A stretch of 64,000 nt of DNA, from the sequence record phage_1; one strand, 5' to 3'. The notes beneath the pieces were generated by a model. That model was not told the DNA's origin and did not search any database. It was given only the letters and a program-made list of their open reading frames with translations. Positions 3,443 through 25,249 of the stretch are shown here, piece after piece (the first letter of the stretch is position 1; each line of letters opens with the position of its first letter). Both the position numbers and the translations under genes were made by a program.

Positions 3443-4162
3443 ATGACATATCCTAAAATTCTGCCTGTTTTAACGCCCACCGTTGTTGTTGGGACGGACT
3501 TAGAGACCCTGGCTTTACGTCCAGATGCCTACATCTTAACGTTGGCAAACGTGGCATTCGATGTTCCGACAATGAAAATGATCGGTTCATGTTACCACAA
3601 AATCGACCCCAATGATGCAAAAGCAAAAGAAATCTTCTACATCGATCCACAAACGGTCGGTTATTGGGAAGGTAAAGGCGACCCCGAATACGCACCGAGC
3701 GAGAAAGCACGTATTGAAGCGTTTTCTGGGACCACTCCACTGCCAGAAGCACTGTGGGCGGCCAAAAAATGGTTGGATGATCTGGGCAACGTGAAAATGG
3801 TTATCACCATGCGCGGTCCCGATTTCGATGCTCCAATTCTGATGAACGCATTCGCGCAGTGCGATATCCCGCCGGGCAAGTACCGCAAGTTTTCTATATT
3901 GGACTCTGACCGGACTGCAGAACGTATTGCATATGCGTTTGGCCTGGAACCGAACTGGCACGCAGAAGCGCACCATTGGACCCGTGGCAAAGAAGCGTAC
4001 GAGCATAACGCTAGCTTCGATGCTGCGAAGGAAGCGTATTCTACGGCACGCATCTATCATTTGGCCCTGGTCGCGCGTACGTACGGCTTCGAACGCATGT
4101 TAGAAGCCCACCGCGAAATGTGCACAGGTGAATACATTCCACCGCAGTTGCGAGGAGAATAA
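3443..4162 (+). CDS. DEDDh-family 3'-5' exonuclease
   Basis: ExoI GTDLETL, ExoII RGPDFDAPIL, ExoIII HNASFDA. Confidence 0.8.
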   Translation: MTYPKILPVLTPTVVVGTDLETLALRPDAYILTLANVAFDVPTMKMIGSCYHKIDPNDAKAKEIFYIDPQTVGYWEGKGDPEYAPSEKARIEAFSGTTPLPEALWAAKKWLDDLGNVKMVITMRGPDFDAPILMNAFAQCDIPPGKYRKFSILDSDRTAERIAYAFGLEPNWHAEAHHWTRGKEAYEHNASFDAAKEAYSTARIYHLALVARTYGFERMLEAHREMCTGEYIPPQLRGE

Positions 4163-20103: not shown

Positions 20104-20956
20104 TATCATTCAGCAAGTTCAAGCGGTCGAAGAGTGGTTTCGGCAAGCGGATATTTACCAATACGGGACACGCGAGCAGCAGCTAGCCAAGTTCTATCGC
20201 ACATTAGGCGACGTCGCTGAAGGTGTGCAGAAGATGGACAACTTGAAAGTGGCGGCGGCCATGGGTCGCTCTCTTTGGGCGTTCGTTGGTCTGTTGCACT
20301 TCGGCAAGCACACGAACGTGGGAGATTTCGTTATTCCACTGGATGCAGCTATAAAAGACCGCACCACGGGAAACACCAAAGAGTTCCGTCTTCATAACCT
20401 TTTTGTTGTTGCCACCGAAGTGGTTGGACTCATATTGCAAGATGAGCACGAGCCCCACAGCTACGTTACCGAGCTGCATAGTTTGGCGCGACAATACCGA
20501 ATGTTGGCGCGTATCTGCGGCCTGGAATTCGGCCGTGTAATATACAACGGACATCGTGTGCTAATCAACACGAAAGGTGAAATGAACGGCATCGGGTTGT
20601 TTGTTCCCGCGTCTGATGATTTTACTGGCGATAAATTGCCTGGTTCTAGACAGATGTCTGGGCCAGCCATCTGTCTGATGTTCCAGACTGTCCTGGACAG
20701 TTGTGTCGCTACGCACCTTGCGCCCTATTGCCACCGGCCGTTTAAACGCGACGAGTTGCCGACAATCAATGCTGCACTCGCAACTACGTTAAACGAACTG
20801 CTGGACAAATATGTTCGTGACTCAGTGCGCTGGAATCGTATCCTGTTCGAACGTGTACCTGAAATAACCGCAGCCTACACAGATGGCGGTGTGAATGTGG
20901 TGATGAATGATGATCTACTTTACTTATTTGAAAGCTTAAAGAGGGATAGTATCTAA
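20096..20956 (+). CDS. Degenerate MazG-like (all-alpha NTP pyrophosphatase) protein, 286 aa
   Basis: GGAGGAG SD supports ATG 20096. Gap-free similarity to the MazG domain of 24308-25249, but the metal-binding acids are replaced. Confidence 0.6.
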
Positions 20957-21987
20957 TGAAACAGTATCTTGAAATGATGCAGAATATTCTGGATGAAGGG
21001 CATGTTAAAGGCGATCGTACTGGGACAGGGACGCTCTCCGTCTTTGGTCGCCAAATGCGTTTTGATTTGCGCAAAGGTTTCCCGTTAGTCACGACTAAGA
21101 AACTCCACCTGCGTTCTATTATTCACGAACTGCTGTGGTTCCTTAGTGGCGATACCAACACCAAATATCTGGAAGATAACGGCGTTACCATTTGGCGGGA
21201 GTGGCAAGATGAAAATGGGAACCTTGGCCCCCTGTATGGGGAACAGTGGAGACGTTGGAAAGATGTGAAACTGGTGCCTAAGAAAAATGCAGCTTTACTC
21301 GAGAAACTGCAAGATGCTGGATACGTGGATTATGGCGACGCGGACGACGGTTCACAAATGTTCGATGCGCGTGTACTTCTGAAACTACACGACCAAATCT
21401 CTAAGGTGATTGACCAACTGCGTAACGATCCTGACAGTCGCCGTATTATTGTCAGCGCATGGAATGTGGGTGAGTTGGATCAAATGGCGTTAGCGCCGTG
21501 TCATGCTTTCTTCCAATTTTACACTCGTGAGCTGTCTATCGACGAGCGGGTGAATTGGGCAGAAGATAACGATAACGAACTCTGGTCTGATTATGTCCAC
21601 AGCACGTACGTACCCGCACCTAAGCGATTAGAGTGGTTGGATAAAGCCAACGTGCCAACCCGTATGTTGTCATGTCAGCTGTATGCACGTTCCCAAGACT
21701 TCTTCCTGGGAACACCGTTCAACATCGCGTCTTACGCATTACTCGTACACATGGTAGCTCAGCAAGTTAACATGGTCCCGGGCGATTTCGTTTGGAGTGG
21801 TGGTGACGTACATCTGTACTCCAACCATCTGGAACAGGCTAAATTGCAGCTGACGCGCCAACCTTTACCTTTACCGAAACTGGTCATCAAGCGTAAACCG
21901 GATTCTATCTTCGATTATAAGTTCGAAGATTTCGAAATCCGGGATCACGTATCCCATGAAAAAATATCTGCACCTGTCGCTATCTAA
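20956..21987 (+). CDS. thyA: Thymidylate synthase
   Basis: [34 protein letters not shown] (catalytic Cys), [26 protein letters not shown]. Confidence 0.97.
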
Positions 21988-22785: not shown

Positions 22786-23553
22786 ATGATGAAGCTCTTT
22801 GCGTTCTCCGATGAATTCTACACAGTGGAATTCGACGACTACGAATACGGGTTATTAGGGGCCGTCGACATGGAAGACGCTAAACGGCAGCTTCCCACTA
22901 GCGAAATAGAAATCATTGAGATTGGGGAAACTAATCTTAGTGGTATTTTGATGCTGGGGCGGCGACCNCGNCCTGNGGAACCNGNGNNGGAAAAANAGNA
23001 AANGNNANNGNTTTTTTTGGTTTTTGAGCCGAAAGACCCCGCAGCGATAGCGAAGGTAGTCGATACGTTACGGCCACAGATTGGCGTCGCGATTGAAAAT
23101 TATCGNTGGGCTCGTTTCTCAGGCGACACGCCGATATTTTCGAATAAGCACTGGTTGTTATGTATCAACAACGACACGATAATGGTACCGTTAACAGGGG
23201 AGAAGAATTTTGAAGATAACTTCGTCCCTGGCGAAGAGTCTGTTATCTTCGAGTATACCCATGTCATCGGAAAGCCGAGCTTCTACCAAGTTCTGATTGA
23301 TGTCTTGACTCACGTCGGTCGAACCATCGAATACCACTACTGGGCACGCCAGGCGCGTTCTAAATGGTTCTCGTTGACGTACGTCGAAGGTTGGGAACGT
23401 GTTGTTGAAAAGATTGACGGGCGCTATGAGCAGATTTGGTTCCTGAACCCGGCTTTCCGTGAAGAATTACCCGCATGGGTAAAAGAAGAGGCGAGCAAGC
23501 TGACGGTTGGCTTTACTAAGCAGGGCGCGCCGTATATGGTTAACTACAAATAA
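22786..23553 (+). CDS. Hypothetical protein, 255 aa
   Basis: GGAG SD; tightly packed in the operon. Confidence 0.7.
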   Translation: MMKLFAFSDEFYTVEFDDYEYGLLGAVDMEDAKRQLPTSEIEIIEIGETNLSGILMLGRRXXPXEXXXEKXXXXXXFLVFEPKDPAAIAKVVDTLRPQIGVAIENYXWARFSGDTPIFSNKHWLLCINNDTIMVPLTGEKNFEDNFVPGEESVIFEYTHVIGKPSFYQVLIDVLTHVGRTIEYHYWARQARSKWFSLTYVEGWERVVEKIDGRYEQIWFLNPAFREELPAWVKEEASKLTVGFTKQGAPYMVNYK

Positions 23554-23564
23554 GGTGAAAACAG

Positions 23565-24044
23565 ATGTCTATAACTCGGATCGATTATCGTGCCGTAGTA
23601 AAAGAACTGTCCAAAGGTCTTATCGAACTGGACTCCGATGAAGCCCGCAACTGTGGCTTCCTGCCACACATTGCACTGAGTGAGTTCCGTACCATCCGTT
23701 ACGGTGCCGGTCGTCAGAAGGGCGTTACAACACACACCGTTGATATGTCAGCAAAGTTCCACGGCAGCGTTCTGTATCTGGTCCACAATGAATCGTTACG
23801 AAACGAAGTAGTGGAGAAGTTCCATGAAAAGGCTGCCGGGAACGGTTGGTTGACCGTGCACTGTAACTACTTGCCTGAGGGTTGGAAACGCGCGACAGGT
23901 GCTGGTATATCCGGCTACGAGAAATTCGGCTTGGTTATTGTCGACGAAGCGGGTTTCTTCTTCAACAAGTTCAGTTACGATAAAATCTATCGCAGTCTGG
24001 TTGACGTAGTAACGCCAGACGTTGTGATTCACCTGATTAATTAA
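23565..24044 (+). CDS. Small P-loop-like ATPase domain protein with a degenerate Walker A
   Basis: GAGRQKGVTT (K to V), VLYLVHN strand, Walker B LVIVDE. Confidence 0.5.
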   Translation: MSITRIDYRAVVKELSKGLIELDSDEARNCGFLPHIALSEFRTIRYGAGRQKGVTTHTVDMSAKFHGSVLYLVHNESLRNEVVEKFHEKAAGNGWLTVHCNYLPEGWKRATGAGISGYEKFGLVIVDEAGFFFNKFSYDKIYRSLVDVVTPDVVIHLIN

Positions 24045-24056
24045 GTAGAGGAAAAT

Positions 24057-24245
24057 ATGGCTGGAGAACTCGGTCGTGGGCAAGCCACAACGTTCATGTA
24101 TCGTGATGGGTTAGGTGCGGATGTAAACATGTCTCCGGATGACGAGATGGTTATCCCTGGACTTGACCCCGACGCAGGTGTGGAAGGTGGCGTTGACCCG
24201 TCGAAAGACGACGACAACTGCACTGGTGGTGCGTGCAAGATTTAA
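24057..24245 (+). CDS. 62-aa acidic microprotein ending in an NrdA-like redox tail (CTGGACKI)
   Basis: GAGGA SD at 24048-24052; the terminator follows immediately. C-terminus PSKDDDNCTGGACKI resembles the E. coli NrdA end PSIQDDGCESGACKI (recalled). Confidence 0.75.
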   Translation: MAGELGRGQATTFMYRDGLGADVNMSPDDEMVIPGLDPDAGVEGGVDPSKDDDNCTGGACKI

Positions 24246-24254
24246 AATACGTAT

Positions 24255-24289
24255 TAGGGTGTCCATATGGACACCCTACTTATTTTTTT
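24255..24289 (+). terminator. Intrinsic terminator (perfect 24-bp palindrome)
   Basis: TAGGGTGTCC-ATAT-GGACACCCTA then CTTATTTTTTT. Confidence 0.85.
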
Positions 24290-24307: not shown

Positions 24308-25249
24308 ATGGGCGAACGTTTCATTATCCAGATTCCGTATAACGTTATTGTTGAACCTAATCAGTACCTGGCACAGATTAATGAGCTTCTGGCTGGATTC
24401 TGCCAACGTCAGTTTGTTAAACCGNGGTCCTTTGANAAACTNTACACCCTNTGCGNGAACAGNGAAACCGGTCACACTTACGTCGAAGGTAAAGTCTTCA
24501 NAGGCNACCAGCGTTTGGAAANAAATGATTTCGAAATGCCGTGGACGTTGGAGGGTGTCGAATATCGTGGTACGGTTGATCGCCCGCGTTACGTGCCTTT
24601 GTACACCATCCCACAATGTATTACTAACGTTATGGGTTGGTCTAAAGCGCGTGGTATTCTGGATAACGGCGTCTGGTATAGCCAAGCCACCAAACTCTAC
24701 GAAGAAGACGGTGAAGCAGCAACCGGCATCAGCAAAACCAAAGAACGTCTTATCATGGACGGCCTAGGCGATGCAATGGTGGTACTGGTTAACTTGATGG
24801 AACTCATTAAGTTTGACTCAACCGATATCACCACATACGTCAACGACGCACGTTCAAAGAAACCACACGCCGGGAACAGTCATTACCTGTTCCACAAAAT
24901 GCGTTTCCATCTTACTTGTGCAGTTGATTATATCTGGGATCAGGCAGGCATCGACTCAGCTAAGCAACTCGAATATAAACACTTCGAGAACAGCGACGCG
25001 GTAATGATCGAATGTCACTTCGCGCAGATGGTCGAATACGCCAATGCGCTGGCTAATGCGTACAACATTACCCTGGAACAGTGCTTCTCACTGGCTTGGG
25101 ATGAAATCAAAGACCGTAAGGGTTTCCTGAACGCGGACGGTATCTTCGTTAAAGAAGCAGACATGACCGCTGCTGAAATCGAAGTAAACGGTTCCCTTAC
25201 TGTAAAAGATGAGGCGCTTACCGATGGCGAAGAAACTGTTCACGGTTGA
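24308..25249 (+). CDS. MazG-like nucleotide pyrophosphohydrolase with an extra N-terminal domain
   Basis: W..ARGI, QATKLYEEDGEA, DGLGDAMVVL, LEQCFSLAWDEIKDRKG...GIFVKEAD match the phage MazG-like family. Confidence 0.8.
   Translation: MGERFIIQIPYNVIVEPNQYLAQINELLAGFCQRQFVKPXSFXKXYTXCXNXETGHTYVEGKVFXGXQRLEXNDFEMPWTLEGVEYRGTVDRPRYVPLYTIPQCITNVMGWSKARGILDNGVWYSQATKLYEEDGEAATGISKTKERLIMDGLGDAMVVLVNLMELIKFDSTDITTYVNDARSKKPHAGNSHYLFHKMRFHLTCAVDYIWDQAGIDSAKQLEYKHFENSDAVMIECHFAQMVEYANALANAYNITLEQCFSLAWDEIKDRKGFLNADGIFVKEADMTAAEIEVNGSLTVKDEALTDGEETVHG

Follow-up and report, generated by a model that had tools for sequence, protein, structure and literature searches.

A phage microprotein resembling the C-terminal redox tail of class Ia ribonucleotide reductase, and its relatives in small phages and bacteria

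De novo synthesis of DNA precursors proceeds only through ribonucleotide reductase (RNR), whose re-reduction through the tail is a textbook step that is placed on the enzyme itself. In NrdA, the cysteines of the tail pass electrons on from thioredoxin or glutaredoxin to the pair in the active site (PMC9669993). The known exception to a tail residing on RNR is the split class II enzyme NrdJa/NrdJb of Pseudomonas aeruginosa, in which the re-reduction module NrdJb is a separate polypeptide acting by dithiol exchange (PMC4520616; PMC9669993); NrdJb “mediates efficient reductive dithiol exchange” (PMC4520616). We have analysed a stretch of 64,000 nucleotides from sequence record phage_1 (called the window below), which forms the final 64 kb of an SPN3US-like jumbo phage, a Seoulvirus, and in particular a 62-amino-acid (aa) acidic protein, MAGELGRGQATTFMYRDGLGADVNMSPDDEMVIPGLDPDAGVEGGVDPSKDDDNCTGGACKI, which is the product of the open reading frame (ORF) 24057..24245 (+), stop codon included. 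The last part of this microprotein resembles the C-terminal redox tail of class Ia NrdA. This tail is a known module as a part of the enzyme, and we found no description of its free-standing form, which occurs in phages and Neisseria and thus appears to be new.

Two other groups of proteins can be compared with the microprotein. Yeast Sml1 and its relatives are small disordered eukaryotic RNR regulators acting at the large subunit, and we know of no bacterial or phage counterpart of them. The likeness to the microprotein, which claims no sequence relationship, is that a small disordered protein would interfere with, or replace, the C-terminal tail step; Sml1-type proteins, however, do not copy the tail itself. 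T4 thioredoxin NrdC and NrdH-type glutaredoxins are phage-encoded electron donors with a thioredoxin fold, usually accompanying a phage RNR. The microprotein would share with them an intervention in the electron supply to RNR, but it corresponds to the acceptor-side tail and is encoded by a phage without RNR or an annotated redoxin.

The class Ia NrdA tail (about residues 737-761 in Escherichia coli) and the microprotein have in common the motif DD.C..GACKI, the C-x4-C spacing, the free C-terminus, an acidic run before the first cysteine, and disorder, which is a prediction for the microprotein. The microprotein differs from the NrdA tail in being a separate gene product (39-157 aa among family members) with no RNR barrel attached, and its family differs from E. 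coli NrdA in an extra VEGG[VA]D, IPGLDPD or acidic L..L..FDG segment. The host's own NrdA comes with a tail, so that the microprotein is an additional copy; without a catalytic barrel, it does not count as an NrdA. In contrast to NrdJb, which is folded (IscU-like plus zinc-finger), encoded beside a cysteine-lacking catalytic subunit and required for that enzyme, the microprotein is predicted to be disordered and belongs with class Ia, not class II. With two cysteines and no predicted fold, it does not have the NrdJb feature as defined in PMC9669993, and because it has neither a tail-less partner nor a fold, it is not of the NrdJb type. The initial annotation of the window, made from the sequence alone, knew of no described example. 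We likewise found no paper on a free-standing class Ia tail and no Pfam or NCBIfam family for it, and the literature on SPN3US gp234 (the orthologue of the microprotein), on phage tail mimics and on trans-acting class Ia tails gave nothing relevant.

The E. coli NrdA used for comparison was taken from the annotated chromosome NZ_CP128926.1 (L009:12151-14436) and ends ...LVPSIQDDGCESGACKI, while the ORF in the window ends CTGGACKI-stop, with the C-x4-C pair, the only cysteines of the 62-aa protein, within its last eight residues. The initial annotation had pointed to this likeness over the last 15 residues and it was borne out: in BLASTP, phage residues 48-62 align without gaps with NrdA 747-761 at 10 of 15 identical positions, with the same cysteine spacing and with both sequences at a free C-terminus (E=5e-5 for the pair). 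The probability of at least 10 identities in 15 is 1.5e-9 when residues are drawn from the phage protein's own composition, and the chance of such a match after correction for 270 phage x 4300 host proteins is about 2e-3. Several relatives are nearer to NrdA than the copy in the window; for example, a divergent one (P0032) ends DDGCESGACKL, with ten consecutive identities to NrdA, and matches it ungapped at 14 of the last 25 residues. A further echo of NrdA that had been proposed for the segment TTFMYRDG comes down to the tripeptide RDG, which is not conserved in orthologues, and is ascribed to chance because 1470 of 2000 shuffles do as well.

To compare the whole family with proteins of known structure, a profile of 31 family members was run against all 177,635 distinct PDB sequences. 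Among the 15 matches obtained with a cut at E<=10, 14 are class Ia RNR alpha C-termini in exact register, always end to end (E=0.011-0.25), and they include E. coli NrdA, 7MDI (N. gonorrhoeae NrdA; PMC11226230), 8VHP and the 1QFN tail peptide; the remaining match, to Nup120 (E=4.7), is at chance level. The expectation that homology searches would return NrdA termini held for the family profile alone, since single-sequence searches of PDB with the 62 aa or with the last 25 residues returned no NrdA. Genuine nrdA genes of Shewanella, Pseudidiomarina, Methylophilus and a Bdellovibrionales metagenome-assembled genome end ..DDxCAGGACKI, and some of these carry EGG or GVD a few residues upstream, like the microprotein family. 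Because genuine nrdA ends grade into the family motif, descent is favoured over convergence, and we conclude from these sequence comparisons that the tail module descends from, or closely copies, the 3' end of class Ia nrdA. When the ORF was compared as DNA with 5,426 E. coli genomes, no match was obtained; the ORF is therefore no recent acquisition of nrdA DNA from the host.

The same comparisons bear on the idea that the product is a precursor of the ribosomally synthesised and post-translationally modified peptide (RiPP) kind, or a small peptide binding metal or an iron-sulfur (Fe-S) cluster, whose likeness to NrdA is convergent. The shortness of the protein and its variable N-terminal part followed by a conserved cysteine-containing C-terminal core would suit this idea, as would the radical-SAM genes elsewhere in the phage and the metal-homeostasis neighbours of the Neisseria copies described below. 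However, the profile is specific for NrdA tails, which it matches in exact register, and there is a gradation from genuine nrdA ends to the family motif. In addition, there are only two cysteines, and no adjacent maturase or transporter is conserved in any of the contexts examined, the neighbours differing wholly between jumbo phages, small phages and Neisseria. We regard this explanation as very improbable.

Two other resemblances were examined and rejected. The acidic segment as a mimic of the NrdB C-terminal peptide gave local alignments no better than shuffles (p about 0.13-0.9) and nothing in hhalign. The mid motif D-I-P-G-L as a mimic of the tip of SSB was weak, because only D/N-I-P is shared with the prophage SSB used for comparison (in L008, ending ...GDNIPF) and the motif is internal, not terminal, in the phage protein.

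The ORF is the counterpart of SPN3US protein YP_009153528.1, gp234 in the original numbering, which is annotated as hypothetical; over the tested 1.3 kb, the window has 99.3% identity to Escherichia phage vB_EcoM_Lh1B and 94% to Salmonella phage SPN3US. Its description in the initial annotation as an acidic, probably disordered 62-aa protein with its own Shine-Dalgarno sequence and terminator agrees with our results: GAGGA lies 4 nt upstream of the ATG, a 10-bp hairpin (24255-24278) followed by a T run lies downstream, and the AlphaFold2 model has a mean predicted local distance difference test (pLDDT) score of 55. Because of this low score and the lack of secondary structure in the model, the microprotein is predicted to be intrinsically disordered. 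In the variable N-terminal part (residues 1-32), a motif LGRGQ.T.F is common to some orthologues only; a short motif (S-L-T-G-D-P ...) G-R-G-Q/L-T-x-x-F is found again and again in this part of the longer orthologues (L010, L014, L018, L019 and L020), and the shortest ones are without it.

Conservation in related phages and of the cysteine pair, which had been proposed as checks, was found in both respects. There are 13 orthologues in five jumbo-phage genera (Seoulvirus, Machinavirus, Erskinevirus, Derbicusvirus and Alexandravirus), and all of them keep both cysteines and end C-x-[GS]-G-A-C-K-[IL]-stop; nearly all other family members share this ending, the sole exception being P0037 with G for A. 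While the N-terminal half is variable, there is a conserved core, [IV]PG[LM]D..(x)..V[ED]GG[VA]D-x3-4-[DE][DE]x-C-x-[GS]GACK[IL], in which the VEGG[VA]D portion of the linker (residues 33-47) is family-wide. For the last 20 codons of the 13 phage orthologues, the proportion of synonymous differences (pS) is 0.75 vs a proportion of nonsynonymous differences (pN) of 0.21. For the last eight codons, pN/pS is 0.16 with synonymous sites near saturation, and replacements are limited to the two variable positions between the cysteines; over the tail of the phage orthologues, pN/pS lies at 0.16-0.28. The tail is under strong purifying selection in the five jumbo-phage genera.

This selection analysis contradicts the view that the ORF is what remains, in decay, of an nrdA lost by the phage, or a functionless chance ORF. 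A relic would fit the plain likeness of the tail to nrdA and the lack in SPN3US, by loss or from the beginning, of an RNR such as phiKZ has; against it stand the ORF's own start, ribosome-binding site and terminator, the lack of nrdA-derived sequence upstream, and the retention of the gene in five jumbo-phage genera, small phages and bacteria with pS of about 0.7 and pN of about 0.1-0.2 in the tail. A relic or chance ORF is thus extremely improbable.

To define the extent of the family, an exhaustive hidden Markov model search covering 1.84 billion representative proteins was done. It gave 28 significant members, all of 39-157 aa, nearly all of which align through to their own C-terminus; the exceptions, P0019, P0028, P0030 and P0007, are frameshifted or read-through products. 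Four PHROGs (38753, 14561, 24014 and 20277) carry the module, all labelled “unknown function”, and Pfam and NCBIfam gave no credible match, the one chance-level hit (P0035, E=0.34) being far below the cut-off. The SPFM assemblies (LR535901-LR535913; H23, H24 and H45-H54) match the region in many short pieces, and these records give clipped or read-through microproteins (P0002, P0005-P0008 and P0019), which look like sequencing-error frameshifts rather than biology.

The annotation of SPN3US contains no RNR, thioredoxin or glutaredoxin. We searched the complete SPN3US genome and the window by tblastn with E. coli NrdA and NrdB and with Neisseria NrdD and NrdG, and nothing was found except the 15-residue tail itself, in keeping with the statement of the initial annotation that no nrdA remnant lies upstream. 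SPN3US, the 94%-identical relative in which the absence was searched genome-wide, is without class I or III RNR, unlike phiKZ, which has RNR genes. The initial annotation had also suggested that the microprotein completes a tail-less RNR elsewhere, and that the rest of the genome be inspected for an NrdA lacking CxxxxC. By annotation and tblastn no NrdA of any kind was found in SPN3US, and since the NrdA of E. coli and that of N. gonorrhoeae each keep their own tail, this suggestion is refuted in the phage and Neisseria settings.

Our preferred explanation is that the microprotein is a stand-alone dithiol tail which engages the glutaredoxin/thioredoxin-NrdA relay and acts at host NrdA, and we give this chain, taken as a whole, an even chance of being right. 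The last 20-25 residues or so reproduce, in free-standing form, the dithiol “swinging arm” at the C-terminus of class Ia NrdA, and the pair Cys55/Cys60 would be reduced by host glutaredoxin-1 or thioredoxin. A precedent for a tail engaging glutaredoxin-1 is PDB 1QFN, in which an isolated 25-residue NrdA tail peptide is bound to this protein. Once reduced, the microprotein may undergo exchange with the disulfide in the active site of host NrdA, or compete for it, and a phage wholly dependent on host RNR for its 240-kb genome would thereby tune the host's production of deoxynucleoside triphosphates (dNTPs). We lean towards a supporting role, namely an extra trans-reductant or adaptor that may sustain RNR turnover, because the phage, which has no RNR, depends on dNTPs made de novo, and its gene for the microprotein has stayed among genes of dNTP supply (thyA to MazG).

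The opposite direction is that of a decoy or inhibitor, in which the free tail competes for glutaredoxin-1 or thioredoxin, or plugs the entrance of the NrdA active site, and so lowers RNR activity or diverts redoxins; a parallel would be disordered eukaryotic RNR inhibitors such as yeast Sml1. The same sequence evidence speaks for it, and the protein is small, acidic and predicted to be disordered; in addition, a brake on dNTP synthesis would suit the place of the bacterial copies in a stress-responsive operon, and small phages may need little de novo dNTP synthesis. However, inhibition of host RNR looks counter-productive for SPN3US because this phage is without its own RNR and has a 240-kb genome; the gene is placed among dNTP-supplying genes (thyA and MazG); and a peptide with both cysteines would be a turnover substrate for redoxins, not a trap. 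We therefore judge a decoy to be distinctly unlikely.

The coordinates of the gene, its parts and its neighbours are listed in Table 1. The rightward block runs in the order of thymidylate synthase, three proteins of unknown function, PHROG 10453, PHROG 2586, the microprotein and MazG, and the microprotein gene holds its place in this nucleotide-metabolism block in all five jumbo-phage genera. PHROG 10453 has no Pfam or PDB relative, and no relative of known function was detected for it. PHROG 2586 is predicted from its AlphaFold2 model (pLDDT 67, predicted template modelling score 0.68) to be a lone RecA-like P-loop domain; the model resembles domain 1 of superfamily 2 (SF2) helicases and RadD, with Foldseek matches at E>=1.5e-3 and a template modelling score of about 0.5. 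PHROG 2586 as a redoxin or flavodoxin partner of the microprotein was rejected on the basis of this modelled resemblance. It has a Walker-B-like VIVDEAG and an atypical GAGRQKGVT loop. The phage thymidylate synthase has 343 aa vs 266 positions of the Pfam profile and thus carries insertions. Single masked N positions are scattered at 22940-23110 (PHROG 10453 gene) and 24426-24530 (5' part of MazG), with none in the microprotein ORF; these letters were left unfilled, and what is said of the two neighbours concerned is based on the masked sequence as it stands and on their relatives in other genera.

Table 1. Positions of the microprotein gene, its parts and its neighbours in the window, and of the related tail genes in Neisseria sequences
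Feature	Position	Strand	Remarks
Thymidylate synthase	20956..21987	+	head of rightward block
PHROG 10453	22786..23553	+	255 aa, unknown function; conserved neighbour
PHROG 2586	23565..24044	+	159 aa; conserved upstream neighbour
Shine-Dalgarno-like GAGGA	24048..24052	+	4 nt before ATG; from sequence
Disordered (predicted) microprotein	24057..24245	+	62 aa; PHROG 38753; SPN3US gp234 orthologue
Variable N-terminal part	24057..24152	+	residues 1-32; from alignments
Conserved linker module IPGLDPDAGVEGGVD	24153..24197	+	residues 33-47; from alignments
NrdA-like redox tail PSKDDDNCTGGACKI	24198..24242	+	residues 48-62; free C-terminal K-I
Tail cysteine Cys55	24219-24221	+	
Tail cysteine Cys60	24234-24236	+	
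Intrinsic-terminator-like hairpin and T run	24255..24288	+	10 bp, 6 GC, then T run
MazG-like nucleotide pyrophosphohydrolase	24308..25249	+	conserved downstream neighbour
Neisseria tail genes	L021:8001-8210; L049-L058 (about 4001-4129); L046; L045:4001-4132; L026-L029		

In one genome, the tail is not free-standing. In L071, a 236.9-kb metagenomic jumbo-phage genome of IMG/VR, it forms an in-frame C-terminal extension of the PHROG 10453 homologue (L071:9026-10093), and the PHROG 2586 gene is missing; the fusion is either a hint of the Rosetta-stone type or a deletion. The thyA frame of the same genome is interrupted (L071:6502-8399), with an N-terminal ORF that has an extra inserted domain and then a separate C-terminal ORF, and this suggests insertion of an intron or homing element.

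The module reaches beyond jumbo phages. Small phage-like contigs have versions of 40-53 aa, which adjoin portal-type genes or genes that match no family; the 6-8 kb inspected to each side of them contain no called RNR gene. A scan of IMG/VR added 21 further small tail ORFs, with no RNR within +/-10 kb of them. In a bacterial scan using one genome per species, free-standing tail genes of 42-45 aa were found in Neisseria species representatives, Kingella (L048) and Moraxella bovoculi (L047), the latter two in contexts other than those of Neisseria. In 12 Neisseria loci (that of the alpha14 chromosome and 11 from the scan), the space between iscS and iscU holds a 42-aa gene, some 70 nt ahead of iscU, and where a contig starts there the tail gene is seen directly upstream of iscU. 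In the 11 loci with upstream sequence, the gene is preceded by an AAGGA-type or AAGAGA site. The 11 complete isc-linked copies vary at 30 nucleotides, 26 of which are third codon positions, and pN/pS is 0.06. A second Neisseria paralogue stands directly after the Nramp gene mntH and is present on hundreds of Neisseria contigs; this mntH-linked type ends CAGGACKI, the same end as N. gonorrhoeae NrdA, and the isc-linked type ends CEGGACKI.

These Neisseria genes are mostly unannotated in public genomes. The iscS gene and the microprotein gene are adjacent in N. meningitidis alpha14 (L021) and N. viridiae (L055), and some Neisseria have an insert of 0.8-1.2 kb between the two; the insert of L053 (3176-3871) is an ORF of 231 aa, the start of which resembles a signal peptide. 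A 634-aa protein named Cas3 (P0042) on a 2.3-kb contig falls in the 90% cluster of the 45-aa Neisseria protein P0039, which is probably an oddity of clustering or gene calling.

Because the module reaches into small phages and the Neisseria isc operon, its possible clients may be wider than RNR, and the isc context suggests that another client may exist. The microprotein might accordingly be considered as a general portable dithiol, rechargeable by glutaredoxin or thioredoxin (a kind of protein dithiothreitol), which serves a non-RNR client, such as persulfide or cluster chemistry at IscS/IscU in Neisseria, and PHROG 10453 or radical-SAM enzymes in the phage. The 12 isc-linked loci with their AAGGA-type or AAGAGA site and low pN/pS, the paralogue following mntH and the L071 fusion all point in this direction. 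So do two radical-SAM proteins of SPN3US and an independent link between RNR tails and the isc system, namely that long class II RNR tails hold an IscU-like domain (PMC9669993). The two radical-SAM proteins are adjacent at 140024-142139 of SPN3US (L005:40024-42139) and are potential Fe-S clients if the role of the tail is isc-related. On the other hand, no client is kept across the contexts, PHROG 10453 and PHROG 2586 being absent from Neisseria and the small phages; the fusion is found on one metagenomic contig and could be a deletion; and the exact letters of the NrdA tail, including K-I at the free end, point to NrdA's own partners. We consider a portable dithiol for a non-RNR client unlikely.

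Several observations weigh against a tail that acts at host NrdA. The tail of host NrdA itself is present at high local concentration, so that a free copy would bring no obvious benefit. E. coli NrdA has nothing that corresponds to the family-wide motifs VEGG[VA]D and IPGLDPD. The genomic contexts also count here: the copies of small phages adjoin structural genes, those of Neisseria lie between iscS and iscU or after mntH and not beside nrd genes, and the fusion to PHROG 10453 in L071 hints at a different client. In addition, class II RNR, thioredoxin and glutaredoxin are excluded in SPN3US by annotation alone.

A class Ia tail that is free-standing in phages without RNR and in bacteria whose RNR has a tail implies either that RNR has a previously unknown layer of control or route for electrons, or that the tail has a new use as a portable dithiol. 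In phage biology, such a tail would reveal how jumbo phages that lack RNR manage their dNTP supply. For Neisseria, it adds an unannotated and strongly constrained gene to the isc operon, and this makes the question tractable. As a wider proposal, which we put forward only tentatively and hold to be somewhat doubtful, tail-only microproteins may be unrecognised trans-acting partners of the class Ia RNR relay, which in bacteria (Neisseriaceae and Moraxella) would be under the control of Fe-S or metal stress and would have been captured by phages, giant ones without RNR among them, to control the dNTP supply of the host. If true, they would be the first bacterial and phage counterpart of the disordered RNR regulators, and RNR re-reduction would possibly be linked to Fe-S assembly.
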